Assembly (NCBI GenBank): GCA_965285935.1
Contig: OZ260662.1
Span: 35,340,001-35,404,000 of the forward strand
From: Ophelia neglecta
Taxonomy: Eukaryota
DNA: 64,000 nucleotides
Direction: 5' to 3'
Shown: piece after piece, positions 13,101 to 42,770 of the stretch
Position numbering within the stretch: position 1 is the stretch's first letter
Layout: every line of letters begins with the position of its first letter
The notes under the pieces: generated by a model
What the model was told of the DNA's origin: nothing
Databases searched by the model: none
The model's input: the letters and a program-made list of their open reading frames with translations, nothing else
Program-made: the position numbers and the translations under genes

Positions 13101-16100
13101 GCACCCTGCGATATGCACCTTGCTTTCCAAGCCCGATCTGGGTCTAAGCTACATTAAATTGACATCATTTAACATCTAATATAAGAAAAACAAATCACAA
13201 GAGTCACTTCTACATGGTGACTTCTTCTTGATTCTTACAATCAGGGTACCCATTGAATAGTGTAAATTGTGAATGAGCTAGCCCTTAACTAATCAATTAT
13301 TTAATATTTGTAAAAAAAAAATCACATCTTTTGACTACACCAATTGATAGAGGCCTATTGTCTGATATTCTTACTTGTTGTGCTCACACAGAATCTTAGT
13401 GTTGTCCACTGGTGGCGGAGGCTTACTGGCCTCGCCTGTTAGCCAGCTTGTAAACCACTCAAGAGATATCCAGTCATACGGCTCCCCTGAAAAGAAATAC
13501 ATTAAAAGTTAGTTACAACTGATGTACCACACATGTACAGCTGTGGCAGACTGGAGACAGTGTGACCACAAGGAGACTGTTAACACTCAGCAATATGGAT
13601 CAATGTTATCATTAGGTCATTATATATAGGAATCACTTTTGTTTCACATTACTGTAAACTTATTTAATGATGCTTAAAGAAACATTAAACTCAGATAAAT
13701 GACCCTACAGAACATAAGCGACCTTAATCTGTTCTTGGTCTGGTGAATCATATGATGCACAATAACCCAAGTTACTATAACAAGTCAGACACTCACCTTT
13801 TTCATAAGACATTTGTGAGTAAAGTCCTTGTATTTCTTCTTGTCTTTCTTTCCCTTTCTTAATGCTTTCCTCCTATAAAACAAGACAAGACAAGTCCCAG
13901 GTTAAGTCAAGGCAGTCAGTAAAAGGCAGGTGCTGTAACATATTCATGATGCATGTGTTACATGTTCCCTTCCGAGTTATCACAGAATTAAATGCTGGGA
14001 AAATTGAACATGAAGTGCATAAGATTCTTAAAGAAACAAATTTTATTTTCTCACTATCATGCTGGACATATCTTTCACCCAATCTTCAAACTGTTGGTTA
14101 TCTTTTTCTACAGCTTCCTGTAGTTCTGGAGGTAAATCTGTGAATTTTATATCACTGGTCTTCTGGGCAGACTCTGAAATAACAACAGGCCACTCCTTAT
14201 GGGTATGTTCTAACAGAAATGTCAGAATGTGTTGTATATAGTCAGTGATGACCAGACGGATACCTTGTTGTGATTCTGATTGCTGTCGAGTGTAAACTAA
14301 CATGTAGGCATTTCGAGATGCGTGAGAACCTTTCATGGACTTTGGCTTCTTGCTTCCTTTTGTACCCTCTGTGAAAAAAAAATAAAAGATACAATTTAAG
14401 CTGTTTTTACTTTCAAATGATACACACTGGTAACTTTTATTGGAATCATTGTGTAATCATAATGGACGAATAATAATCCTGTGTAGTTTGGTATTTCACA
14501 GAGATTGTAATTGTGAATGTGCTAGCCCACAACAGAGATTGTAACTGTATGCACAGAGCAAGAGATAGTATACATTTTGTTTTGGCAAACCTATATGCAG
14601 TAGTATTAGGGCATGTGAGCAGGCTAGGCAAACCTACATGAGTGAGTGGGATGAATGGCAGAACATCATTTTGCCTGGGGGTGGGGCAAGGGGGGGGAAG
14701 GGGGGGGGGGAGGGGTTAGATGATGCAGATGGTCAATTAGTTTCCATTCCCCCTTACACCTTCCCTTCGTAGCAGAGTACACGGCTCCGCTCTCTTCGCC
14801 TGTAGCACTCTGCCGAAATCCGTCAATATGGAATTCCCTTATCTAATTTGCATACGAGGCTACCTCAAGTGACCTCGTACTGACCCGGCATATATATTTC
14901 TGCCGCTGTCCCGCAAGCGCGCTGACCTTCATATCAACGAATCAGATGCAGCCTTCCGCACAACTACGTCACAGCATGTCATTTCATTTAATAGAAAAGG
15001 GCTTTCCCCATGCCTTAGCTTAAACGGCCTCGTTTTCGAATTCCGGGTTCTCGGAAATTTCCCTCGGTTTTCAGCAGAGGGTGATGCGGAGAAGCTATGC
15101 GATAAGCATTAGCCTCTGCTGCGAAGGGTACCTTACACCACAAACCCCAGTTTTATAATCCTTGTAATTGCTCGTGTAGAGTAATGAAAATGCTGAACTA
15201 TGGATGACTGATTTTAAATTTAATGAAAATTTGGAGCCTTGGCTTAACTGTTAAATTGTCAAGAAAATGGCCGGATATGAAGCTGAAATGCTTGAAAAAT
15301 CTGCTAATAGAATTTTAAATGAAAACTAGGCAAAACAGAATGTGACCCCAACTGCCATCAACACACCCCACATTGGTAATAACAGACATTGCAAGCATTT
15401 CCTTTCATTAGTTTTATTCCATGAACCAAGTTGTAGTTATGGTAAACTTCTTTTCTGTTCAAGTTTAAATGCAATACCATGCAGCCTAAAATAGTACCAA
15501 GCAATCCTCCTGTTTAATATGATGGGAATATCTTAAAATAGTTATCCCTAAAATCTCGCAAAACTGACTTTGGAAACCAGGTTGTATCAGCCTGTTTCTA
15601 TGTTTGTCTTTATTGCATAATCAGTCCATCCCAGTATCATGTCAAACATCTGTGTCTGGCATGTTGTTTTTCTGAAACAGGTACAAAGGCAGTACCTTGC
15701 AACCTACGATAGTTACTTTCAACATCCCTGCTTAAGTATGACGACATCTTAAAGTTTTCATTAAATTATCAAAATTTTGTGGCATAAAACAGGCACTGAC
15801 TCTAATGTTGCTTCATCCAATCTTGTTCAAAACAAACATGATTATCCCATTATCATATGTCATCCTTTTGTGCCGTTGTTGGTTTAACAGCTGATCTGGA
15901 TGAAGAATTCTCTCCAGCAGATTACCTACAACAGCTGTCAGAATACATGAAAACATAACGCTTACTGCACCTTGTGGCAAGACATAAACTGTACTGCAGT
16001 AGGCTAGTTTTTGTATTACCAAGTTTTTGTCACTTCAGGTTAATTACCTATATCTTCCTCATTGCCTAGCTGTAGGTTTTTGCCACTCATCTTTTCCGTA

Positions 16101-19100
16101 TCTTCATCGTTGAACTTGTGCCATGTTTGAGTTGGTCTATCTTTAATATGTGCAACATAGTGTCCACTGTATGCACTGGGCCCTCTATGTATCAGTACTG
16201 CACTTAATTCATAGACCAGATTACCACCTGAAACATATATTAACATTATATTATGAAGGTGTTGTCTATAAACCCCTTTCATTACATGTAATTTAATGTA
16301 ACCCAATGCCACCAATACTGAAGGGTTAAACTGGGTCCTAAACTCTTTTTTACTTTTCTCTGACAAGAATTCAGGAACAGAAAAACTGTTAGGTCTGTCC
16401 ATATATTGAAGGCTTTGAAGCTCTATAAACGTTCCTGATGGGAAATTTCTATGTTAGGAAAGAATTTATTGTATGACCACTAATGATTAACCCACTGAAC
16501 ATGAATTACATTCTACAAAATGGTCATGCAATAGAGGGATCAGCCAGTGCAGCAAATTAAAGGGGTTTAAAAAAGAATGTGCCTTACACTAGGGCTACTT
16601 GTGTGCTCTAATCTTACGAAACTCTCACCTTGTCTCAAGAAGTACTGTCCCATATCTAAAACTTCTGGAAACTGAATATATGTGTTCAATTTCTTCTTCT
16701 GTCCAGTGTTTCTACAGAGAGAACATCAACCCAAATGGTTCTTAATCTGAGACTTCTTTGTAGAAATCGGTTTTTAAATAGTTTCAATATGGAGAATAAG
16801 TGCGATAAACTTTGTAGATATAACATGTTAAACAAATGTCAGATTGATCTATTTTTGATAAGAACATAAGTTGCCTTTTACCTGTCAAATACAAATCTAA
16901 GCAACTGTAAGTTGAGGACAGGTGGAAGTGACCTCAACTCTATTTTTCTGGCTGCATTTTGTTTCAGCTGACACTGGGCACACATGTATTTATTGTCACC
17001 TTCAAGTTTTTCTTCCTGTATGATTACACATACAATATCATACAACAAAACAAGAAACAAAGTCAAAATACAAAGTGACTTTAACCCAATTCTCAATTAA
17101 TAACCCAGCTTCCACTGCTCTATATTACATTTTAGTTATTACAATTGCGGTGAAATAAACATAATAATTCAGCATTTAAACAAACTGAATAACAGAAAAG
17201 TTGGCCTGAACAAAAGCAATAATAACCTCTAAGAATTCTTCGATACATTCTCCTAGATCTCGGTGGCCTTTGATGTTTAGATCAAGCTCGTAGAAGTTAG
17301 AAGGTGTGTCTGACCCAGTTCCACATACTGCACAACTGTAAAAAAAAATACAGCTAACACCAGTATACTACTTAATGCTGGCCATATGGCAAAAGAATCT
17401 ATTATGGCAGGCAAATAGGTTTTGGAACTCTGTGAACAATCCCTCCCCACCCCCCACCCCCCACCCCCATGGGACTTAGCAACAAAGGACATCAAGATGT
17501 TTTGGAGACAAAATGTAATTGAGCAAAAAAGTATATGGGATTTCCAATGGGAGTGTGGTTTAAAAAAATGACGGCCAGACTTGGAGTTAAAGCAAATAGC
17601 AATTGCCATAATCAGCATTTTAACCTTTGTCATTGTGCTTAAAAATTGACAAAGACTTCAATATTATAGTGGAGTAATGCCCCTCCATTGTTTCTGCAAC
17701 AGCCCTTCTAAGAAACCATGTTTATCAACATCATCTGAAGTTATGAATTTATCTGATAATAAATAGATTGTGGTTACCTATTATATTAAAGGTTATGTAC
17801 GTACCTTGTGACATATGCATATTTGCCAACAAATTGTTCCCTGATGAAATTTTGCAGTTTTGGATTGGGATGTTGAGAAAGTGTGTCTTCAAGAAGTGAT
17901 GTGAATAGTTTGGAAAACTCCTGAGCGTCTTGCTGCTGTGCAGTGTCTAAACTCAGAAATTCAATAAATCCTGAAGGGTCTATGAACCTATAATTGAAAC
18001 AATAAAGTTACCGTGTGATGGGGAGCATGAAGTAGGGGCAGGGATAAGTTTGCTCGGTGGATTAAGGTAGCGATAGTTGAGTATGACGTCACGGTATATC
18101 GTCACAGGGGAAGGGTCACTAAGGCATTGTGTATAGTCAATATAAACCTTTCATTTTAAATAAAGTCCAGAAGAAGGCAGGCTTGCCTGCCGAAAATTCG
18201 ACATTAATACCTTGGTGTTTTGTTTTATTTTAAAGTTACAAGGATAATTTTTCTTCATATAACAGCTGGTTTTGAGTAATTTAAGTTGTACACTGAATGA
18301 CAATAGTTGATACTTGCCTTCGCTTACTGAATAACAGTAATCCAAATATGAGTTGTAGGTGACCACATATAGATTTGGGTTGAAGCGACGTGGGCCCACC
18401 TTCTCCATGGCTGGCTTCTACAAATATTGGATATTGTCCTTTATATCTATCCAGAGCAAGCTTTTAATGCTTAATGTTCTCTACATGCCATCTTCAGATT
18501 AATAAAAGCTTGATAATAAAATAGATATGACCTAGCTCAGCTGATGTACAAGGGTTTCTTTGCAAGATTTTAGATTTTCAGAATGAAATTAATCATACTT
18601 CATCAGTTTGGTCAAACTGGACACACTTTAGGGGTGGTATTTTGCTTATGGCACCTTTGGTTTGATAGTGATACTTGTTAATTTTTATTATTTCTACATT
18701 TCCTCATTTCCGTGTTTGAAGATTTGTAATTTAGTATATTCTGATTCATTGTTTGTGTTGTAGTATGATGTTGTGTGTGACATCATCAATATGTGTGTTC
18801 ACTTACAAGCCTTGACTTCTCTTCAATAAAGATGTGTGACATGTAAAGACGTGTTCTTTCCTTGTCTTATCTCTGGACTTTAGTAGTATCATTTTTACCT
18901 CAGTATGCCAACAATACTATGTTCATTACAATAAACACCTTTATACCATGTATAGTGAAATGACAAACACAACCTTCCGCCTCTTTTAAGTATGTGGCAA
19001 ACTGCCATAAGTGAGTTAATTTTTAGGAAACAAGTTTACCTTTGAGTGGTTTGTCAACGTCTTGCCACTGTAATAATGCTGATCTGAATTCCAAGTTATG

Positions 19101-21274
19101 AAACCACAGCTAGAAAGAAGGAAGAAAAGCAAATGCAAAATGAAACCCTCTGCCTTTAACATAAAACTGCAATCCATTGAACCGATGTCTTTCGAAATGA
19201 AATATGTGACAACTAAAATCAAAAGCTCTGCCTTCATTGACAGTAGTATGTGAATTACCTGGAGAAATGTGTTGACATAGCAAGTTGCACCTAGGTTCTT
19301 CAGTCCAATGAACGAGTTCTACATTGATAAAACAAACTCAGGGATTGGTGTTATTGTATGTGATCATTTTATGAAGGAGACCAAGGAAACAAATACTTGG
19401 GTGCATGTGCTTTGGCCACTGGAATTTGGGATGTCAGTGCAAAAATTTCTCTCATGTACTTGAAGCGTAATCAAGCCTTGCAAGGCCTCCTAATATGGAA
19501 CATGGTGGTCATGCTCAAAAGGCTGGATCTCAGCACCAACCAATGGTCAGTTAGGTTTGTTTCTGTCTCTGTCCTGTTCCTTGTCAAATAACCAGACAAT
19601 AACATTTCAAGTGCTGACATCTGAATTCCATAAGATCAAAGCCCAGTACACTTCACAACATACAGTATTTTTGCAAACCATTAATCGTATCAGAAAATTA
19701 TCAATTGGAACATTATTGAACATTTACAATTATAGAATTATTCAACAACCATATTCATTCTACCTCGAATTACCGCCAACATTAGGAATATTATTAAAAA
19801 TGGTTGTTGGATGAGGGTGATATATAATCAGGGGTTGGTAAAGGCCTTTCTTTAATCACATGAATCATGAAGATTTTTGTCATATTTGAGCTACGCATGC
19901 ACTTTAAAATGTAAGCTGCAGCAAAACTTGCATAACATTATAATTGAAATCACAGTCAAAGTAATGTTACATACTGTTTAAATTAAGTTTCATTTTGCAA
20001 TGTAACTAGGGCCTATGTCCTACAGATTGAGGAGTCCTTCCAGTGCCGGTAAAATTGTCCTTTGGCCTTAGGAACAAATTCAATGCATCCTTAACACCAC
20101 ACATGTAAAGAAAGATGGTCTAGCTGCAGCTGCCCTGTTTCCCCGGCCTGTAATCAGTTAATGCCAAAGGTCGTCACAGCCATGTGACCAGCTCAAGCCT
20201 AATTTGCATACAGAGAAACCACATGGGTAAATTGATGGGGGGATGGTCCACAAATGTCCACATCCACAGCAGATTTATAATATCTTTATTTGTTCTGGGG
20301 TCCCCAAAATTTATACCTGTTGTTGCTTATTAATTAAGCTGATGGCTATTACACAAACCTTTTCTTCATTAGAGCTGTGATAAACACAGAGAATGCAGCT
20401 TAAATCATGTGAATTAACATGAGGGAGAAACCTTCTGGCAATAGGCGGGTGTGGCAGGAATTCAGGGATAAACGAGGGAAGACTGAATTGCCATGTTAAA
20501 AGCACTGGTAAAAGTAACCAAGATCCTGCAATTGTGAATTTGTATGAATACAGTAATCTTGAACGTTGAAGTCATCCATATCACTGGTCAAAGTGACTTT
20601 TCACTGATCAAATGATTTGTGCATTTATTTTGCCACATCAATGTGGTGCCATTCTCTTTTCGAACCATGACTGTCCATTAATCACCGGTCTTGCAACAAT
20701 TTTAGTAGGCAAAAACTGGTGGTCCGAGATTTTTCTGAAAAACTGTGAAGACATTATTGTTTTGGACTGATTCATGACTAAGTATTACAACTTTACTTCT
20801 TTTCTCCTTTCCGATTCAGGGTCTTCTATGTCATGCCACTGGTTATCTGTTATATCAGCAAACCACTCCCTTTCACCAAGGCCATTCAAACATAGAGGAT
20901 TCCCCTTACAATTTCGCCTACAGAAAGAAAAAAATCTATCTTAGATTGTTTGTACCCTTGCATCATGTACTCCATATGAAAAATATCAAAGCTCTTTTTG
21001 ACAGAAGCTCGATACTCAACTAAATCAGAGAATTAATCTTATGTCAATTTGTTTTTTCCTAAAATTTTCTTTTGAGGACAACACATATAGTGATAAGCAT
21101 AAATTGAGAAACAACTGGTTTTTTACTACACCGTACATACCTACAGGCCCCCAACTTGCATGGAGCAAGGTTTGTTCTGTAGGCAAACCGTATGTTATCC
21201 AAAGTAACCTGATCCGGGCTCGTTGTCTCTGCCCATTGCCATGCATTCTTTTCTAACTGCTGCTTTGGAGCCAT
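4193..21274 (-). CDS. USP48: Ubiquitin carboxyl-terminal hydrolase 48, 26 coding exons, ~1055 aa
   Basis: Hand-spliced with all phases consistent: 21274-21141, 20917-20797, 19318-19259, 19109-19040, 18417-18318 (GC donor), 17987-17805, 17335-17227, 17015-16882, 16711-16629, 16227-16048, 14368-14264, 14173-14055, 13872-13797, 13486-13375, 13148-13053, 12804-12682, 11800-11523, 11190-11066, 10925-10750, 10361-10248, 10148-10027, 8038-7863, 7029-6886, 6757-6632, 5788-5737, 4242-4193. Motifs: [27 protein letters not shown], Cys box [24 protein letters not shown], His box [22 protein letters not shown]...WHKFND, DUSP-like segments, C-terminal ubiquitin-like domain, and the USP48-typical end [13 protein letters not shown]. 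Confidence 0.96.
4556..5716. mobile_element. Probable non-autonomous Helentron/DINE-like repeat in the last USP48 intron
   Basis: Internal ~90-bp direct repeat (CAAGGTCACCACT..TGTATATGATTTCCTATAAGTG near 5351 and 5577), a (GGAC)n tract near 5668 and a short terminal hairpin. Boundaries are approximate. Confidence 0.45.
8084..9417 (-). mobile_element. Pogo/Tc1-mariner DNA transposon remnant with truncated Brinker-type DNA-binding domain
   Basis: TA dinucleotides at 8082-8083 and 9418-9419 flank imperfect TIRs (CCGTAAATGTTCCAATGTAAACCGCG versus reverse complement CCGTTTCCGTTCCATCGATAACCGCG). Minus ORF 8762-8646 [38 protein letters not shown] resembles the Brinker-like N-terminus of pogo transposases. 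Confidence 0.8.
10930..11025. repeat. 24-bp tandem repeat (~4 copies) abutting a USP48 splice acceptor
   Basis: GGGGTATTACAGTAATATCAAGCT repeated about four times directly beside the acceptor at 10926-10927. Confidence 0.9.
14761..15130. mobile_element. MITE with ~17-bp TIRs and 9-bp target-site duplication
   Basis: TIRs TTCCCTTCGTAGCAGAG and CTCTGCTGCGAAGGGTA. CCTTACACC is duplicated at 14752-14760 and 15131-15139. Confidence 0.85.
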
Positions 21275-21592
21275 GAGTTCAGGTTACCTTCAAATAATTA
21301 GACAACATCAATCACAGACTAATTACATGAGATTTTTCCACAAGTATGTCTTCAAGAACTGATTGGAAGGTTTGGGACATTTCTTTAGCATACTTTAATG
21401 TTTAAAAATGTTTGGATGGGTTTAATTTTGCAAGTTGTCATATTGCGATCAAGCGTTTTTTCACAAAGTTCTATAAACCTGCGTGAATTGAGGAGATTGG
21501 AGGTGGGATGGCAAGCCCGTGACAGATGGGAAGCGATTGTCACTCACCGTACAGATAGATTTATGACGATTGATTGAGAAGCGGAAAAATAA

Positions 21593-21842: not shown

Positions 21843-22449
21843 AATAGACAAGGCTTTTGTCGGTTCAAACTGTCATAGCTGTCATGTCATTTACCCATGT
21901 CTCTTATCTGGAACCTTGTGCCTTCCTGAACAGTATGGCATTTCCCAATAGTAAGTTCAAAAATTCAATAGAAAAATGTTACCGGGAATAAAAAGGAATC
22001 CAGAATACAGCGTGAAGTGCAAATAATATTCTCACTTTCCTTCAAAAAATTTGTATAATACATTAATTTCATGTGTGATTTGATTTAAATTACCCCCTGA
22101 AGAAGGGTGTCAAAACTTTGTGATCCCACCCCCACCTGATCAGGGATTGGGTTTGGGTGCATTTTTGCGCTTTTAGCTCACCTTTTCCGCAAAAAACGCG
22201 GGTTTTCTCTTTACGTGCGCTGTAATGCTTTGCCCCCTCCCACCATGGGTACTGAATGAGCGGTGCCTGGCCAGCGTGGCCACGTGGAGCGGGAACCCAG
22301 TGTAGATGGTTTCTTGAAACACGCGCTTCCATTGGCTGGGAGGTCCGCTGAGCGCCTATGACTGCTTTGCCGGAAACCAATCAGGCTTTGTGTACTTTCC
22401 ACGCTTCACTACAAATGGCTGTCAACAAAGTTGTGCCTTCCATTCAACC

Positions 22450-22827
22450 ATGGCAGAAAAAAGAAAACCAACCACGAACTCGGCCACAAACGAGCCGAAA
22501 ATCACGAAATATCTTATACAGACACCTGGAGGCCCTAGCCAGAGTCATGATAAAAACAATAATGAATGTGATAGCCGGCCGGCAGATCAAATTTCAGCCG
22601 ACGAGACTCAGCCTCGGGCGCCAGGTGACTGCTCAACTTCAGCGACAGTGTGTGAAAGTAAAGGAGGTAAACACCTCGTGTTCTTGCCTAGCTGGCAAAA
22701 TAAATATCCGTGGCTGACATACGATGCAGGTAACAATAAAATGTTTTGTTCACTGTGCAAAACGTTTGGGTACACAAATACTATGGCACAGGGGACTGCC
22801 AATTTCAATTTTACTACTTTAATGTGA
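22450..22827 (+). pseudogene. Truncated hAT-transposase / ZNF862-like N-terminus (TTF-type zinc finger)
   Basis: MAEKRK...FLPSWQNKYPWLTYDAGNNKMFCSLCK...MAQGTANF matches the ZnF_TTF pattern. The ORF stops before the zinc-binding His residues. It is preceded by a GC-rich stretch with CCAAT and CACGTG motifs (22260-22385). Confidence 0.65.
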
Positions 22828-24161: not shown

Positions 24162-25520
24162 TTGTTTAGTACTAGCGAAACAGACTGAATATTATATCGT
24201 TTTTAATCAATAAAGGCTGATTCCATGACATATTTTAAATCCAATACGAACTCTCCCAGCCGGGTACATCAAAATGGCCCCTTTATCACCATCAATCGCT
24301 AGGTGGCGTATAATTAAGTCGAATATATGTGATGGAAAAGCCCTTTATTGATTTAAAAAACAGTCTAAACATAATTATAAGTGCCAAACAAGATAATGGG
24401 GTTATTTCAAAAAAATTGATAGTTTTTAGAGGTTATACAGGGTTATCACGGTATTTCAAAGGTTATTCCGGTGTTTCGCTAGACCGGGGGGGGGGGGGGG
24501 GGGCTGTCGGGACAAGAAATGATTAGTGCATATATATATATCACAATTTGCGAATGTGCCACTGAACGTGACCAGGGTTCTACTCCCAGATGTAACATTG
24601 TGACGATTCTTTCAATTTTTTAGCAAAATTTTTAACAAATAAAATTAAAATAAGCGATTGTCTAAACAGATCCACAGATAGTTATTTGGTTTCGTTTTCC
24701 CGCCATTAAAACAAATGACATGACCAAACATTTGAAAACATGTACTCGCTTTTGCCAGTTCATGTCAAGACGAAAGTGCTAATCATGTTTATGAATTGTT
24801 TATTACACCTTATGCTTCAAACTGTAATGATTAACGGGAATTCAACCTTATTGCGTGTTACTCACCGTTTGTCCATAAAAATCACCACAAATCGTTTACT
24901 GATCTCATCACATCATTTGCTGAAAATTGCATTTACGGTCAACAATCCACGTAATCCAATGTCAAGCAACATTCGATCCCAAGAGTAGCACACAAACCAT
25001 GGGTAGCAGCATTGCCCACTTAGAGGTCTACTACTTAAACATCTGGGAAGGGGGGGGGGGTTGGGGATGTAAATCGATGATGGCACACTACTTACTTATG
25101 GTATACGCTATTTTAAAGTTTGTAGTCATTTTGTATTGAATAGATTCTACATTTGCTCAAGACACCTTCTTATTCTCATAAATTGTATATTACTATTAGA
25201 TCCAGACTTCCAACATGTAATCAGAGCACTGATTATTGAGTAGATCTATTTCTTCTTCTTTTATTATTTTTCATAACACTGTGGATAGTGTTATTCTTTT
25301 CCACTTGTGAATTATATTCTAAACAAAACTATTTCTATGTTGCAGTTGTGTACCATTCTTTGATTTAGGCCTAACTCCAGAGGCACATAAGCAAAATTTG
25401 GTTCTTATAACCCTTGTGTTAAAATAACGACTTTTGTGACTTTTATTTAGATCTAGTTGTATTTTGCAAAGTGAAATTTTCTATATATATGTACCTGTGA
25501 CAATAAAGAAATAATAGGCC

Positions 25521-27122
25521 TATATATACTCTACTAACATAATTGCATAATTGATTCCGAGATCTGTACTGAGGTACTTGAGATGTTGGCTCTTTTTCTT
25601 TCTGTTGCCGTGCAATGCAACAGGAAGTGTTCTAACATTAGTGATTCGCCTAGGCCTACCATATGTACCTCTCCGCATGACGGACATTCATTGCGCTCGA
25701 CGCTTTCCACGTGTCTTTGCAGTTACCTGGTTACAGTGTGCTGATGGTCATGGTCACGAGCTTAAGCATCACTTGTGCTCCTTTACGTGGCAGTGCTGAT
25801 TTGACCTTGACCACATGTCACATATCAGACGTCCTGTATTCTGTGCAGATCTCTCTGTACAAGTCCAGGTTGTTGTAAGTGGAGGAGGCAGTCTTGTCTC
25901 CAAAGTTTGTCCTGTCACTGGTGTACGATGTTCATTTTCATGTTTTGTGGGTTTTCCATGACATCTTACTGGGTATAACTCCGGGGTGTAGCCAGCTGCG
26001 GAGTGTCTCCTGTAGGCCGTAGGCCTATTGGTAGGCATCTAGCATCACAGACGAGGGGCTGTGCCGTGATATTTGTCCAGATACGTCCCACATGGTGAGG
26101 GTGGCTATGAGGAGCCACTTGCTTACCTCGGCTACAGACAAAGCAAGCGTGTCTCTTACGAGCCTAAGTCGTCGGCGATCCAGGTAGATAGTACTCTTCG
26201 ATTCAGTACCGAGCCCAGTTGGGCCAGAGTTGCGGCGTTGCGGGTGTGTGCTGGGAGATTCTGAACGGACTTGGCGTGTAGCCTGTGGGCCGCTTCTAGC
26301 AGGGTAAGCTGGAATCTACTCAGTCGAAGAATTTTTCCAAAACCTTACAGGACGAATTTAGAGAAAACGATGATGTCATACATCCCCCCCCCCCCCCCGA
26401 GCATCCCACTCCCAGCAAGGCGTTCATTTTCTTCTTTGTAATAGGCCTAACATAACAGTATTTTTTCTTCATATACGAGGCCCGCAACAAGTCTGCACCG
26501 ATTTTAACAAGGGGTAGAACATTTGTCCAATTTTAATTTCATGGACAACTACTGTTCGCCTCCCCCCCCCCCCCCCCCCAGCCTGAGAAAAGAAAACAAA
26601 CCGTTCACCCTTGGAAGTCCTTTTTTGACATTAAGGTCTAACTATCTTAAATCTGCATGTATATGCAGCTATAAAAAGTAGGTGGGGGGAGGGGGTGTCA
26701 GTACTTATTGAGGTCAATGTTATATTTTCAGTGGGTTGGTAAAAATGTAAGATTCGTAAATTTCTCCCTGTGTTCCAAGCGGTAAATAATGACCGCCCCT
26801 TAGGCCTATAGGCCTAGGAGCTCCTTTACTCTAGAATAACAAACATGATATTGCAACACTGCATTTCAAGTGCAATGTTTAACCAGGTCTCACATGATAC
26901 CTATTAGCCTATAGTGTTCGTGTTATAGGTCAAGAAGACTATCAAGGTATATTTAAAAGCTAACTAAAAGCTTATATATATATAGGTAGGCCTATAGGCA
27001 TAGTATTTTTCAATATAGGTCCATGCTACATCTCCGTGATCGTCTTCTAAGTTCAGCTAATTGGCCTTTATTTCAAATGCAGATCTATCCACTGAAGTTC
27101 AGAAAGAGAGTTTGCACCCGAT
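25521..27122 (+). promoter_or_regulatory. Putative promoter and spliced, uORF-containing 5' leader of dapF
   Basis: TATATATA at 25521. Candidate donors GAG|GTACTT (25574), GTT|GTAAGT (25875) and AGG|GTAAGC (26304). Candidate acceptors TTTGCAG (25722), TTTGTCCAG (26080) and TTTATTTCAAATGCAG (27082). An in-frame TGA lies between the last acceptor and the dapF ATG, so the upstream exons are untranslated leader. AUG uORF at 26092-26187. Confidence 0.5.
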
Positions 27123-28055
27123 ATGGCATCTTTAAAAACTAGGGAACAAGAAGACGAGTATGGCAATATGCATGATATCCGTTTCCGGAAATATCATGGT
27201 TGCGGAAATGATTTCATCATGATAGACAATATGTCAGGATTTTTTGATGACCTTAGCGCGGACGTAAAATGGATCCGAAGCTTGTGTGACAGAAAGTTTG
27301 GGATCGGAGCGGACGGTCTCATAGAAGTACGGCGGCATCCTAAATATACCTTCGAAATTAAGAGCTACAATGCAGATGGACAACTGAGCACCTTCTGTGG
27401 GAATGGAGCTCGTTGTGCAATGGCGTTTGCTCGAGAGCTCCAACTCCTTGTATATAACGAAGCTACCTTTTTAGCCTCGGACGGAGGCCATCGCGGCATA
27501 TTCGACGAAATCAATGGAGTTGTTCATATCAAGATGCAGGATGTGGGTTCTGTCACAAAGCAGGACGACCGAAACCATTTCGTAGATTCCGGGTCGCCAC
27601 ACCACATCCGGATAGTCGATAATCTGGTGGGATATGACGTTATTGCTGAGGGTAAGAAAATGCGCAACGACAAGCAATATCAACAAATCGGGGGTACCAA
27701 CGTAAACTTTATGCAGACTAAAGGCCCACTGGAGATCCAACTGCGTACATTCGAGCGAGGAGTGGAGGATGAAACTTTCGCCTGTGGAACTGCCTGCGTG
27801 GCAGCGTCCCTGGTGGACGCAAGCCTACGTAGGCCTAAAAGAATCGAAGAAGGTGATGCAGGAGTCTCCTGTTGCACTCGTCCAAATTGTTTTGTATTCG
27901 ACTCGAAGCACAGGCATGTACTAACCTTAGGGGGAGAAATAATTGTAACCTTTGAAACAACGGATTACAACAATTTCAATGATATAAATTTGATTGGTCC
28001 TGCTGTGGAAGTTTATACCGGCACCTTGCTGCATCCGAAGCCCAACGGGATGTGA
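27123..28055 (+). CDS. dapF: Diaminopimelate epimerase, bacterial (Bacteroidetes-like) type, intronless
   Basis: 310 aa with the DapF motifs KYHGCGNDF, LCDRKFGIGADGL, YNADG...CGNGARC (catalytic Cys 1), DSGSPHH, GTNVNF, RTFERGVEDETFACGTAC (catalytic Cys 2) and LIGPA..V..G. Good Kozak context (GATATGG). Confidence 0.95.
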   Translation: MASLKTREQEDEYGNMHDIRFRKYHGCGNDFIMIDNMSGFFDDLSADVKWIRSLCDRKFGIGADGLIEVRRHPKYTFEIKSYNADGQLSTFCGNGARCAMAFARELQLLVYNEATFLASDGGHRGIFDEINGVVHIKMQDVGSVTKQDDRNHFVDSGSPHHIRIVDNLVGYDVIAEGKKMRNDKQYQQIGGTNVNFMQTKGPLEIQLRTFERGVEDETFACGTACVAASLVDASLRRPKRIEEGDAGVSCCTRPNCFVFDSKHRHVLTLGGEIIVTFETTDYNNFNDINLIGPAVEVYTGTLLHPKPNGM

Positions 28056-28485
28056 CAAATAGTTTTTTAAAAAGGGCCTTTAAGTGAATGGTAAGCCTAT
28101 CGGCCTACGGAATTATAGAGTCATGCGTTTACCATTGAGGTAATATATAAATATATGTATGAAAATATAGGCTAAAATAGCACAAAGCAGGTTGTGACCA
28201 ATACTAAAGTTTATACAGCGGATACCCCGAAAGAGCTTAATACCTATATCGTCTATGCCGCGGGAAAGTTTCAGTGATAGGCCTATACATATGTAGCTTT
28301 ATCATAAATATTCTTTACACTGTTTTATCTCTTGTTTAATCCTTTGTGTGATAAAATATATTTCACTTAGTTGTTTGTGATTCAATATGCTAAGCGAAGC
28401 GTCCGTAATCTTGCATGTGCGTGTATTTAAGCATTAATCAAGTTGGCTTGTCTGTTCGGTAGTTTACGTACAGCCAATTTTCTAT

Positions 28486-29670
28486 AATTATTTTTCGCCA
28501 ACTTTTCCGAAGAAAAAATGGGGGATATTTATTGGGCCTCGAGGTTGTCAGGTAGCTTCGCCCCCGCCCCGCCGGAAGAATTTGTTTGGCAGTAACTATG
28601 AAACGCTTCGACGCACAGAAACCATTTGGTCGTTATTGGTGTGCTTGGGGCCAGGGACTTTTTCGGGAATACTTTCACGAACTTTCGACTATTAACGTTA
28701 CTACCGAAGTTGCGAAATGTTTTTATCTCCCCTTGTTACGTGTTTTTGCAAAAAGTATTACAGGTACAGTGCCAAAATTGACACGTATGTAGCGCCTATG
28801 CAATGGCCATTCAATGATTAACTTCTGCAAATATATACTTGCCATGGCAATGGATATGAAAAATGACATAATTTTTGATGCTGTCTTTAATTTGAAATTG
28901 ATACCTTGAATTACTATAGGAAGGGTATATAAAAATGCATGCTGCGATTCCATTAGTGTTTCCCGATTTGACCTTGATCTACGTTTTCATGGTCAAATTG
29001 ATAAAACCATGATTTCAGCCTTAACTTTAGTAGTTAGAAACCTTAAAGTACTGTGGGCCCCTGTAGGAAACAACATTTTTCGCATTTTTATAGAGTTTAA
29101 ATTGGCCTTGGAGTTTAATTTCAAGGTCAAATTACAAAATGAAGATTTCAGCCTTTATTTTCACAGTTAGAGCCTGGAAGCATACGGGGAACCTATAGGT
29201 AAAGACCTTTTTCACATTTAATGGAGTTTTCCGATTTAACCAAAATGATTAATCGAGCCTTATTTAGGTTGTTACTGCCTAGAAGAACATTGAAATCGCA
29301 TCGTTAAAGGTTGTCAGATTTGACTTTGGTGTCCATTTTCAAAGTCAAATAATAAACGTGAAGAATTCAGGTTTTTTTCAGCAGTGAGGGCCTAGAAGTA
29401 CTTTTGGATCCTGTAAGAAATAACATATTTCGCATCATATCATGTTTCCGATTTGTCTTTGGTATTCATAGGGAATAATGATTACAGCTTTATTTAAGCA
29501 GTTAGAGCCTAGAAATATGTTGTGAACCTAAAGAGAGTCACATTTTTCTTACCTTATCCCGGAGTTCAAATTACCAGAATGATGATTTCCGCCTTAATCG
29601 CAGCAGCAACCGCCTTGCTGTGCAGTGGGAACGTATATAAACCAGGCTTTTTGCATCTTCTAGAATTTCA
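28486..29670. mobile_element. Probable non-autonomous Helentron-like repeat
   Basis: T-rich start with a short hairpin and CCCG tract, several degenerate internal repeats with TGACCTTG/TCAAGGTCAA motifs, and a TTCTAG-type end. Boundaries are approximate. Confidence 0.4.
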
Positions 29671-36427: not shown

Positions 36428-36579
36428 NNNNNNNNNNNNNNNNNNNNNNNNNNNNNNNNNNNNNNNNNNNNNNNNNNNNNNNNNNNNNNNNNNNNNNNNN
36501 NNNNNNNNNNNNNNNNNNNNNNNNNNNNNNNNNNNNNNNNNNNNNNNNNNNNNNNNNNNNNNNNNNNNNNNNNNNNNNN
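36428..36579. other. Assembly gap (N run)
   Basis: Run of n characters. Confidence 1.
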
Positions 36580-38384: not shown

Positions 38385-40013
38385 TTAACCAACTGTAAAA
38401 TCACGCATGTTGATAAAATTCCTCAATAATGCTGGAAGTGGCAAAAACTTAGAGTAATAAAATGGTGATACACCACCTGCAACTTTAAAAATATGTTTAC
38501 GAATTGTACTAGCTGATATTGCTTTCAAAGTGGGAAATGCATGTTCCTCGATAACTTTATAAATATCGTTAGCACAAGTTGATGGTTTGCTTGGTACTCG
38601 ATCTTTTACCAAATTAGCCAGCCAAATGGGATTTAAATTCCATAAAAAGAGCAAGAAATATTTTCGGTTCTCTGTTTTCGAGATCTTGGATACCAACGAA
38701 GCTAGAGTTATGTAGTCTTCTAATATTTCTTCACCCAGAGACTTTCCAATCAGATCAAACAAATCAAAGTCCATTCCGGCTCGTATCGAAAACAATGGAC
38801 GAACAGTAAACGGAAACTGAAGAAGTCGGAGAATCTGAGGCATTTCTGACATGAACGTCCCTACGGCTGGTCCTTGGAAAGATAAAGGATGTAAATCTCT
38901 GGTTTCTTTAACCAGATCAACGAGATGTCTACCACGGGAGTCTAGGACATTGATATCACCGCCAGCATCCTGCCAATAAGATATTATTTGCAGAGCTTTA
39001 ACAAAATCCTCCTCAGTCAAGTCATCCATGCCCTCTAGTTTTTCCACAGTGCAATGAAGCGCTGGCTTCTGCATTTCATTGCTATTGCTCAGAGTCCAGC
39101 CATTATGGTGTAGAAATTTCACCCCGTCCATACACAAATCGCCAACTGCAATATGCAGAAGGGAGCGCCCAGAAAGGCTGCTCGTCCCAGGACCCCAACC
39201 CCGACTGACAAGATACTCATACTTCCTACTAGATAATCTGCCTGTATTATTTTCTGATGTTTGTTTAGTTTGTTTGTAAGATACATGTTGCTGTAAGATA
39301 TATCTAGCTCCTCGATCAATAAGAAAATTTGCAACCTCGAGGCTGTGTTCTGCAAAATCCAAAGGAGTTTTATTTTTCAAGTTTCTAATGTTCACATTAG
39401 CCCCGGCAGATACCAATATTTTCACAATTGCGAAGCGACCTGTTGCACATGCCAAGTGTAAAGGAGTGTCCCCATCGGGAGCCAGCGTGCCGTTAATATG
39501 AGCATCATTCGCGATCAGATAGGACACTATGTCTAAAGCACCATTTTCACAGGCTAACGACAGGGCTGTGAATTCCTCAACGTTGTAGCCGAAGTCCTTT
39601 TCGACATCTATGTACAGTCCTTGCGAGTTGACATCGGCTCCCTGCAACACAAGCCTTTGGACCAGACTGAGGTCTTTCTGTCGGCAAGCAAATTCCAGGG
39701 GAAACGACCGAGAAATGAGGTTGCCAAAGGAGTCACAGTCGTCATACTGTTCACTGGACTCTAAACCGTTGTTCAGCAAATAGGAGAGTAGACTGTACCT
39801 ATGCTTTTTGCAGATCAAATATACACATAAACATCGTTCTTTTGAGCTAATGTGCTCCTGAATAAGGAAACCCTTCTTGAATGTCTCAATTAATTTAATG
39901 ATGTTGTTTTCTTCACAGGAAGACCGAAAATCAGCTAGCAGTTGTTGCTGTTTTTTCACCTTCATACTTCTGGTCGCCTTTTGGACGTTACTTTTGCCCT
40001 TGAACCAATCCAT
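38385..40013 (-). CDS. Ankyrin repeat and SOCS box (ASB-like) protein, intronless, 542 aa
   Basis: Ankyrin repeats (FPLEFAC...LVLQGADVN, TALSLACENGALDIVSYLI, GDTPLHLACATGRFAIVKILVSAGANVN, KTPLDFA, GRSLLHIAV) and a C-terminal SOCS box PTLKAISASTIRKHI...LPLPALLRNFI. A TATA-like element lies ~60 nt upstream. Confidence 0.9.
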   Translation of the reverse strand: MDWFKGKSNVQKATRSMKVKKQQQLLADFRSSCEENNIIKLIETFKKGFLIQEHISSKERCLCVYLICKKHRYSLLSYLLNNGLESSEQYDDCDSFGNLISRSFPLEFACRQKDLSLVQRLVLQGADVNSQGLYIDVEKDFGYNVEEFTALSLACENGALDIVSYLIANDAHINGTLAPDGDTPLHLACATGRFAIVKILVSAGANVNIRNLKNKTPLDFAEHSLEVANFLIDRGARYILQQHVSYKQTKQTSENNTGRLSSRKYEYLVSRGWGPGTSSLSGRSLLHIAVGDLCMDGVKFLHHNGWTLSNSNEMQKPALHCTVEKLEGMDDLTEEDFVKALQIISYWQDAGGDINVLDSRGRHLVDLVKETRDLHPLSFQGPAVGTFMSEMPQILRLLQFPFTVRPLFSIRAGMDFDLFDLIGKSLGEEILEDYITLASLVSKISKTENRKYFLLFLWNLNPIWLANLVKDRVPSKPSTCANDIYKVIEEHAFPTLKAISASTIRKHIFKVAGGVSPFYYSKFLPLPALLRNFINMRDFTVG

Positions 40014-41432: not shown

Positions 41433-42770
41433 TTAGACATAAAATTTAAGTTCACATTCAGACATATCATCTGGCCCCAATTCTGGACAGTCAAGGTCGT
41501 GTTTAATTTCTTTGTCTCTAATTTCAGTATTGGGAGTGTCTGTCTTTTTCCTTTTCAGAGAAGAAATGGGAGGCTGGCTGACAAAATTGTGCAATTCACC
41601 AAGTTCTTTTGCAGACCTTTTATGGGTAACTATTTCCTGGGACTCTCTATCTGGCTTATTATCAGTCTCATTTTTGACGATGGCAATCGTAGAATGCCCA
41701 GATCCTTTTAACACTGTAGTTTCCTGAGATGGCAGAATTGATTCATCAGAAGAATTTAAACTTTTGACACACGAAACTGTGTCATCTGGTAAAACTTCAG
41801 AAGTGTGTCCTTGACTTTCACTTATTTCCTTTTCTTTGATTGTACTTAAAGCTGAAGTAAGGAGTGAGTTTTTAAACTTGACAATGTCCTGAATGTAGAT
41901 GATAACTGATTTCTTGTTTACTGAAGCAGGAGAAACCCATGGTAATTCTCTGGCCAATGATATCATGACGTTAGTCATTTCAAATACCCTAGTAGATATA
42001 ACTTTTGTATCCACAACCCTGTGTCTTTTACAAAATTCAGACAGAGTTACTTTCATTCTTGTAGCCCAATCTTCTGACTTCCAGGCAAGATATGCAGCAG
42101 CTGAGATGAGATGTTGTGGCTTTCTTCCCTCCACCAGCCAGACACTTCTACAGACTTGTACAATCTGCTCTGTTAAACTGATCACAGTGTCATTAAAACC
42201 ATATCCTTTACACTGGGAGCTAACAAGGTCTTCCAAACAAATTGATGGAATCTCAATTGAAAATGTAGAAACAATTTCCCTCTTCCACCTTACAAACTCT
42301 GCTACTTTGCATCCTATAAATTGGCACATCTGACTGACAGTTATAGGCACATTGTTTTGTCTACATATGATATAAATGCATACACCTGCCATGACGATTT
42401 TGCTGCTGACTAAATGTGTTTTGAACTTAGGCTGATAAAAAACAGTCTTGAATGTCTCCTGGGCAGATTTCTTTCTTTCTGGAGGGAGCAGCAAGCAGGT
42501 GGCCAAATCATCCAGTATCTTCATACACTCCAGGAACCCCTTACATGGAGGCAGCTCAGAGTCGTTAGCTGCCCCATATACAGATGGTAAATTCTGACTA
42601 TATTGTTTAAATTCCTTTGAAATCACATTAGGAGCAAATTCACTGTTGTGAGGTTGGTCTGCAGTGAAACATCCCTCCTGGACAACTATACCACAGGCTG
42701 TGCAAACCTTCTGGCACTCGGCATCTTCCCACCTAAGAGCAGGCTGTCCACATGACGTGCACATCTCCAT
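41433..42770 (-). CDS. BRF2: Transcription factor IIIB 50 kDa subunit (TFIIB-related factor 2), single coding exon
   Basis: N-terminal zinc ribbon CTSCG...CTACG, two cyclin folds (GVCIYIICR; WLVEGRKPQHLISAAAYLAW), LARELPWV and a C-terminal DDMSECELKFYV TBP-anchor-like motif. The 445-aa length fits BRF2 rather than BRF1. A 5' UTR acceptor (CTAATTTCAG) lies at 42826. Confidence 0.88.
   Translation of the reverse strand: MEMCTSCGQPALRWEDAECQKVCTACGIVVQEGCFTADQPHNSEFAPNVISKEFKQYSQNLPSVYGAANDSELPPCKGFLECMKILDDLATCLLLPPERKKSAQETFKTVFYQPKFKTHLVSSKIVMAGVCIYIICRQNNVPITVSQMCQFIGCKVAEFVRWKREIVSTFSIEIPSICLEDLVSSQCKGYGFNDTVISLTEQIVQVCRSVWLVEGRKPQHLISAAAYLAWKSEDWATRMKVTLSEFCKRHRVVDTKVISTRVFEMTNVMISLARELPWVSPASVNKKSVIIYIQDIVKFKNSLLTSALSTIKEKEISESQGHTSEVLPDDTVSCVKSLNSSDESILPSQETTVLKGSGHSTIAIVKNETDNKPDRESQEIVTHKRSAKELGELHNFVSQPPISSLKRKKTDTPNTEIRDKEIKHDLDCPELGPDDMSECELKFYV

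Follow-up and report, generated by a model that had tools for sequence, protein, structure and literature searches.

An old Bacteroidota-type diaminopimelate epimerase gene in a bilaterian chromosome and its possible role, with lysA, in the salvage of bacterial diaminopimelate into lysine

The window analysed here is a stretch of 64,000 nucleotides (G000:C2:35340001-35404000) of the host assembly G000, which comprises 762 Mb in 223 contigs; positions given without a contig name refer to this window. It contains dapF, a gene predicted to encode a diaminopimelate (DAP) epimerase of bacterial type, located at G000:C2:35367123, 35 Mb inside a 122-Mb scaffold, and constituting the sole DapF locus of the assembly. 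The host is a bilaterian, as established from the transfer RNA set of its mitochondrial contig (17.8 kb, 21 transfer RNAs detected with aragorn -mt, including trnK(ttt) and trnS(tct)) and from mitochondrial cox1, in which 8 TGA codons are read through. A second gene of the DAP pathway, lysA, lies on another chromosome, and we think it rather probable that the two encoded enzymes together salvage bacterial DAP into lysine. The features on which this proposal is built are the following.

27123..28055, + strand: coding sequence of a DapF-type diaminopimelate epimerase, 310 aa in a single exon from ATG to TGA (28053-28055), recognised as an open reading frame (ORF) matching PF01678 and TIGR00652
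27396..27398, + strand: TGT codon of catalytic Cys92, the first thiol (FCGNGARC), aligning with the CGNG motif of solved DapFs
27783..27785, + strand: TGT codon of catalytic Cys221, the second thiol (ACGT), at the start of helix 222-235, aligning with ACGTG of 5ha4 and 9mro
27828..27905, + strand: lineage-variable insert, approximately residues 236-261, placed after the Cys221 helix and before the strand that follows (alignments A1 and A2)
G000:C1:79511756-79515737 (= L013:2256-6237), - strand: lysA, seven exons, located by a whole-genome lysA profile search

The dapF ORF contains no internal stop codon, and its product passes the cut-offs of both family models, namely Pfam PF01678 (DAP_epimerase; E = 1.5e-31, 109.4 bits for a cut-off of 34.7) and the NCBIfam DapF equivalog model TIGR00652 (156.8 bits for a cut-off of 114.65). 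In a 102-sequence alignment the columns of Cys92 and Cys221 are nearly invariant, each being at least 90% conserved. The same 102 sequences served as input for an AlphaFold2 model (predicted local distance difference test (pLDDT) 93, predicted template modelling score (pTM) 0.90) that displays the two-domain alpha/beta architecture of DapF with the active site between the domains, and in which helices begin at residues 93 and 222, next to the two cysteines. The best matches of this model among solved structures are almost all DapFs, with template modelling (TM) scores of 0.65-0.81; rank 1 is 8qzy (E = 4e-25), and rank 9 is 7vdy, an O-ureidoserine racemase with the DapF fold.

We take the DAP ligands of the H. 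influenzae enzyme to include Asn11, Gln44, Asn64, Gly74, Asn75, Asn157, Asn190, Glu208, Arg209, Gly218 and Ser/Thr219. Alignment of the window DapF to 5ha4 reveals that N29, N83, G93, N94, N193, E211, R212, G222 and T223 are retained, while the equivalents of Gln44 and Asn157 are Gly65 and Ser158, as is usual in Bacteroidota DapFs. The one unusual feature of the protein is the insert of about 26 residues (236-261), which has no counterpart in bacterial DapFs and is modelled as a low-confidence loop (pLDDT of 83 for residues 231-240, 57 for 241-250 and 87 for 251-260). Judging from sequence and model, the ORF encodes a canonical two-cysteine DapF, independent of pyridoxal phosphate and predicted to interconvert LL-DAP and meso-DAP. 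The initial annotation had described an intact, intronless DapF with both catalytic cysteines, and every element of that description, including the sequence motifs it quoted, is present in the gene.

The seven exons of lysA tile TIGR01048 colinearly (model positions 9-154, 156-211, 206-246, 250-303, 300-355, 355-389 and 388-414). All seven have lysA as their best-scoring family, and their scores add up to approximately 303 bits for a cut-off of 297.9, a total summed over exons searched singly rather than the score of one joined protein. The first exon scores 127 bits against the chloroplast LysA of Arabidopsis (6n2a) versus 71 against the best other solved LysA; this plant-type exon, set beside a Bacteroidota-type DapF, indicates that the two enzymes differ in ancestry. 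A lysA elsewhere in the genome had been anticipated by the initial annotation, which had also called for a search for dapB, dapL and dapA. Six-frame, exon-wise profile searches of G000, which cannot prove absence absolutely, returned no match for dapB, asd or ddh. The dapA search yielded a single, unconvincing exon of 42.7 bits, most likely part of a native gene of the DHDPS family, and the dapL search only weak aminotransferase matches of 26 bits, which are not convincing either. On the basis of these searches, the host genome is predicted to encode exactly the last two steps of the pathway, from LL-DAP through meso-DAP to L-lysine.

Several observations place dapF firmly in the host chromosome. 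Contigs from three public runs span the gene (26212-28606, 26627-28637 and 26627-28642), and their depth over dapF equals that of the flanking non-coding DNA. A single sample underlies all three runs, and the assembly was probably built from them. They therefore give no independent confirmation of it, but they do rule out a copy number that is grossly different. The run contigs differ from each other by single-base variants in the flanks and the gene alike. Within the coding sequence, 27803 A>G and 27830 T>A are both synonymous, and 28053 T>C, found in the contig of one run, converts the TGA stop into CGA (Arg) and adds five codons, which may represent a stop-loss allele. No bacterial genes were found as neighbours of dapF, the nearest ORFs being exons of USP48 and a zf-C17orf113-like frame. 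With contigs bridging both junctions at flank depth, a single locus and a gap-free link to USP48, the gene is a genuine resident of the chromosome, as had been proposed, and the check for a chimeric bacterial insert came out negative.

The relationship of this gene to living bacteria is distant. No bacterial protein is more than 46% identical to the window DapF, so that the near-identity to a living bacterium considered in the initial annotation is not seen. The top bacterial matches all belong to Bacteroidota (38-46%), in agreement with the Bacteroidetes-like ancestry it had suggested, and the best named ones are Cyclobacteriaceae (Algoriphagus and Pleomorphovibrio, 44-46%). The closest relative of all is P0001, a protein of 322 aa that is 53% identical to the window DapF and has several small indels and the position of the insert in common with it. 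P0001 is encoded on L001, a 10.6-kb ENA contig of low coding density from another eukaryotic assembly, in which dapF is present in a single copy (tblastn).

The surroundings of the two genes are also related. Just upstream of the window lies a many-exon eIF4G-like gene with MIF4G, MA3 and W2 domains (G000:C2:35329687-35338172, + strand), and L001:429-6499 is colinear with it, at 74.9% identity over 1113 aligned residues and 67-85% identity in nucleotide blocks. The distance from the eIF4G-like gene to dapF is 2.8 kb in L001, where USP48 is absent between them, and 29 kb in G000, where USP48 intervenes. Because this common linkage is very unlikely to have arisen by chance in a 762-Mb genome, the ancestor from which both hosts descend must already have carried dapF, and the synteny speaks for inheritance rather than a one-off insertion. 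Between the window and L001 copies of dapF, the number of nonsynonymous substitutions per site (dN) is 0.44 and synonymous sites are saturated, to the point that the corresponding synonymous value (dS) calculated by NG86 was incomputable for every pair including the window dapF. For the eIF4G-like gene of the same two sources, dN is 0.19 and dS about 1-2. Since both dapF ORFs are intact despite saturated synonymous sites, they appear to have been under long-term purifying selection; a dN/dS ratio of roughly 0.2 would follow only if the dS of the neighbouring gene were borrowed.

Homologues beyond this pair were sought exhaustively among 1.84 billion representatives, combined with genomic-context look-ups. 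Full-length homologues in single ORFs on long, gene-poor contigs were found in at least five other eukaryotic assemblies, one of them with a B-box/NHL neighbour. A profile search with the alignment of these eukaryote-context sequences retrieved mostly Bacteroidota proteins and one new long homologue, P0275. RefSeq proteins labelled “diaminopimelate epimerase-like” from two gastropods, Gigantopelta aegis (XP_041365037.1) and Haliotis asinina (XP_067656490.1), belong to the same group. In an unrooted LG+G4 tree, all eukaryote-context rows fall into one group with support of 89/81. When 76 named bacterial rows were added, the unrooted tree contained an 18-row group (Shimodaira-Hasegawa-like approximate likelihood ratio test (SH-aLRT) 89) that holds all eukaryote-context rows and none of the named bacteria. 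The approximately unbiased test does not reject a single clade made up of 22 such rows (p-AU 0.456), and a constraint that joins the window DapF and P0001 to the named Cytophagales lowers the log-likelihood by 88 units (p-AU 0.046).

In these comparisons all relatives outside the eukaryote-context rows are Bacteroidota-like. The simplest reading, and a likely one, is that the gene was acquired once, long ago, from a donor resembling Bacteroidota. The initial annotation had inferred a genuine horizontal transfer. An acquisition peculiar to this animal does not hold, since the gene has its neighbour in common with its nearest relative, groups with all checked eukaryote-context homologues and thereby largely falls into an old, vertically inherited eukaryotic clade, a placement that the initial annotation had named as refuting its proposal. 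We regard dapF as an inherited gene of long standing, belonging to a group found more widely in animals and other eukaryotes that stands beside the Bacteroidota DapFs, not as a private recent transfer.

The region upstream of the coding sequence has features that could provide for its expression.

25750..26303, + strand: G+C-rich stretch, candidate promoter and non-coding first exon (G+C of 0.51-0.52 vs about 0.37 around it)
26300..26309, + strand: putative 5′ splice site CAGG/GTAAGC, with the putative exon ending at 26303 (sequence only)
27066..27082, + strand: putative 3′ splice site, a pyrimidine-rich tract followed by CAG (sequence only)
27093..27095, + strand: in-frame TGA ten codons 5′ of the ATG, read from the sequence (open frame of 319 aa)

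The in-frame TGA fixes the ATG as the start codon and makes any upstream exon non-coding. The start codon lies in a good context, with g at -3 and G at +4. The acceptor-like tract ttatttcaaatgcag ends at 27082, which would make 27083, 40 nt upstream of the ATG, the first position of the putative exon, and a consensus donor (AGG/GTAAGC, cut between 26303 and 26304) is found at the edge of the G+C-rich stretch of about 550 bp. These motifs, which had been pointed out in the initial annotation as an acceptor 40 nt upstream of a Kozak-context ATG with a donor further upstream, are found in the sequence as described. They would fit a non-coding first exon followed by a 779-nt intron in the 5′ untranslated region (5′UTR; 26304-27082) through which transcription would proceed. 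Acceptor-like tracts no more than 50 nt from the start codon also occur in two eukaryote-context homologues, L014 and L015. Two long poly-C tracts (26384-26398 and 26564-26579) are located inside the putative 5′UTR intron, and the run contigs thin out or break around 26364-26590, near these tracts.

The other genes and open frames recognised in the window are the following.

16043-16402: exon with a UCH domain, on the USP48 side
21062-21283, - strand: USP48 exon 1, with the start codon near 21274, 5.8 kb from dapF with no gap between
22318-22824, + strand: zf-C17orf113-like ORF of transposon type, between USP48 exon 1 and dapF
38388-40013, - strand: intronless ORF of 542 aa with ankyrin repeats, just past an N gap and adjoining the BRF2-like ORF
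41436-42770, - strand: intronless BRF2-like ORF of 445 aa with TFIIB repeats

The N-terminal exons of the host USP48 look very similar to human USP48. The C17orf113-type zinc finger frame is typical of domesticated or decaying transposase genes. A gap of 152 N (36428-36579) separates dapF from the next recognised host genes downstream, among them an alanyl-tRNA synthetase exon. The initial annotation had placed dapF on a gap-free stretch with host genes on either side, which is correct upstream as far as USP48 exon 1 and incorrect downstream, where this gap intervenes. The CpG observed/expected ratio of the BRF2-like ORF is only 0.17, and a word-indexed search of 5.8 billion proteins recovered no homologue of it at E <= 1e-10.

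A palindromic motif, TAGGCCTATAGGCCTA, occurs with near copies at 26801-26816, 26987-27002 and 28092-28108, as well as at 25514-25528 and 28277-28291. These 5 matches, all around dapF, are the only ones in the 64-kb window, for an expected number of 0.02. The exact 16-mer is found 190 times genome-wide, compared with 0 for its reversed control, and the spacing of some copies, 8 nt apart, suggests a short repeat based on TAGGCCTA. We considered a repeat-flanked mobile insertion of dapF and rejected it, the only local repeat being this short palindrome with its 190 copies across the genome.

Taken together, our results favor a two-step salvage of bacterial DAP into lysine by DapF and LysA, a function that we hold to be reasonably probable. 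The presence of lysA together with the absence of the upstream DAP genes favors this interpretation. An animal that does not synthesize DAP must obtain the substrate from bacteria, whether from food, gut flora or associates. An old dapF of Bacteroidota type would already have stood beside the eIF4G-like host gene in the ancestor common with the source of L001. The input would be free DAP coming from ingested bacteria or from associated ones, DapF would epimerize LL-DAP to meso-DAP where needed, and the unlinked, seven-exon LysA would then decarboxylate meso-DAP to L-lysine. LL-DAP is a biosynthetic intermediate of bacteria and a cross-linking residue in the walls of some Gram-positive species, while meso-DAP is the form found in most Gram-negative walls, for which LysA alone suffices. 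We further propose, more tentatively and at somewhat less than even chances, that free-living marine bilaterians, among them gastropods and the present host, keep a very old, vertically inherited module in which a Bacteroidota-type DapF and a plant- or algal-type LysA convert cell-wall DAP into lysine.

A number of observations weigh against this proposal. Meso-DAP is a substrate for LysA without any help from DapF, so that DapF would be of further use only where LL-DAP is available. Two bacterial-type enzymes that free DAP from muropeptides, Peptidase_S66/LdcA and NlpC/P60, were not found in searches of the host. The only AATAAA 3′ of the dapF stop codon is at 29351, 1.3 kb downstream. The gene evolves at about or over twice the rate of its neighbour (dN 0.44 vs 0.19). 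The support of the eukaryote-context group is moderate, and in the LG+G4 tree its interior is a polytomy that includes three rows of bacterial length, one of them from a Flavobacteriaceae cluster; moreover, the trees are unrooted and most members of the group carry no taxon name. Two homologues from other assemblies that fall in the group holding the eukaryote-context rows, P0132 with C92G and P0153 with 16 changes at conserved columns, indicate that DapF function has probably not been kept in every lineage of the group.

The rapid evolution of the gene would also be in keeping with an enzyme repurposed as an epimerase or racemase for a substrate other than free DAP, such as another amino acid or a DAP-containing peptide, unrelated to lysine supply. 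The O-ureidoserine racemase 7vdy ranks among the top structural and sequence matches, which illustrates that the DapF fold supports other chemistries. The lineage-specific insert of 26 residues adjoins the catalytic helix, and a catalytic cysteine is lost in some members of the group. Against this, 62 columns reach at least 90% conservation across 82 mostly bacterial rows, and the window DapF retains 57 of them, within the range of 56-62 of these rows themselves. It is also identical to the H. influenzae enzyme at 11 of 13 ligand residues, and the two that differ, Gly65 and Ser158, are common to Bacteroidota DapFs. Since, in addition, lysA, the next step, is the only other gene of the DAP pathway kept in the genome, we find a repurposed enzyme unlikely. 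Even less probable, in our opinion, is that dapF serves a bacterial symbiont whose synthesis of lysine or peptidoglycan it would complete or control. One member of the group, Gigantopelta aegis, is a vent snail with endosymbionts, while for another, Haliotis asinina, no obligate intracellular symbionts are known. The occurrence of homologues in at least five other eukaryotic assemblies does not fit this explanation well, and no genes for building peptidoglycan turned up, although no search was aimed at them. Such a role does have precedents in mealybugs and whiteflies (PMC6838666, PMC4607527 and PMC8659303).

The two other explanations concern the origin of the gene rather than its function. 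One, close to the horizontal transfer inferred in the initial annotation, is a recent, lineage-specific transfer from a living bacterium resembling Cytophagales or Cyclobacteriaceae, consistent with the best named matches (Cyclobacteriaceae, 44-46%) and with an intronless ORF that stands out by its G+C content (46% vs about 37% around it) and its CpG observed/expected ratio (1.05 vs 0.49 for the window). This view is difficult to reconcile with an identity of at most 46% to any bacterium, with a closest relative that sits on a eukaryotic contig beside the same neighbour gene, and with the grouping of the eukaryote-context rows. The cost of the Cytophagales constraint given above and the recurrence of putative, host-like 5′UTR intron motifs in other lineages point in the same direction, and we judge such a transfer to be very improbable. 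The distinct composition of dapF relative to its flanks could also be explained by an assembly artefact, by bacterial contamination joined to host DNA or by a silent, unexpressed relic. We give very little credence to these possibilities: the contigs of three runs cross both junctions at flank depth (bearing in mind that they come from one sample and probably represent the assembly data), they carry differing single-base variants in flanks and gene, no bacterial neighbour genes surround dapF, and the ORF is intact in both G000 and L001 despite saturated synonymous sites. Inheritance of an old gene, most plausibly employed together with lysA in DAP salvage, remains the interpretation that we prefer.

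According to textbooks, animals cannot make lysine, and the known exceptions are sap-feeding insects in which transferred dapF and lysA serve obligate endosymbionts. Our analysis reveals the last two DAP steps encoded in the chromosomes of one bilaterian invertebrate, with relatives in gastropods and several other eukaryotic assemblies. If the salvage module proposed here is real, lysine would be only conditionally essential in such bilaterians, peptidoglycan serving as a direct source without any symbiont; if the enzymes are active, the bacterial cell wall would be a direct source of lysine for grazers and filter feeders. The dapF locus also lends itself well to the study of how a bacterial gene that lacks introns may gain a host promoter and a 5′UTR intron. 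Part of this picture was already known, as RefSeq names such proteins in two gastropods, and dapF or lysA of choanoflagellates, cnidarians and trypanosomatids appears in published transfer surveys.

Among characterized systems, the DapFs of Bacteroidota such as Algoriphagus, Pleomorphovibrio and Pontibacter (EC 5.1.1.7, TIGR00652) belong to the same family as the window DapF, with the same core length, both cysteines, the GIGADG, GSPHH and ERGVEDET residues, and 38-46% identity. In contrast to them, the window gene resides in an animal chromosome, its product has an 18-residue N-terminal extension and the 26-residue insert after the Cys221 helix, and in the tree with 76 bacteria it groups with eukaryote-context rows, outside every named bacterial family. 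The gastropod proteins XP_041365037.1 and XP_067656490.1 are animal-encoded DapF homologues found on chromosome-sized records and belong to the same moderately supported group, but they are only 37-38% identical to the window DapF and form their own subgroup (support 100/96).

Among insects, the whitefly Bemisia tabaci and the mealybug Planococcus citri carry nuclear dapF and lysA, that is, the last two DAP steps, as found here (PMC4607527, PMC4943190 and PMC8659303). The transferred genes are reported to be involved in lysine provisioning, for the whitefly in PMC8659303. The donors of the insect genes are reported to have been Enterobacteriales, Alphaproteobacteria and Planctomycetes (PMC4943190), and the genes serve obligate endosymbionts, whereas the DapF described here is of Bacteroidota type and the first LysA exon of plant type. 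Trypanosomatids carry lysA, and Herpetomonas muscarum also has a Bacteroidetes-like dapF whose product clusters with Bacteroidetes with a bootstrap of 99 (PMC3846528); only the end of the pathway is kept, as in our host, but these organisms are protists and not animals. Finally, one study counts dapF among the transfer candidates of the choanoflagellate Salpingoeca rosetta and reports that its candidates in amino-acid metabolism are shared, as orthologues, by choanoflagellates, sponges and cnidarians (PMC7971027), and a coral genomics study includes in its list an algal-type diaminopimelate decarboxylase from an anthozoan (PMC4878875). Neither report treats the two genes as a joint salvage module, and the host in whose genome we find both is a bilaterian.

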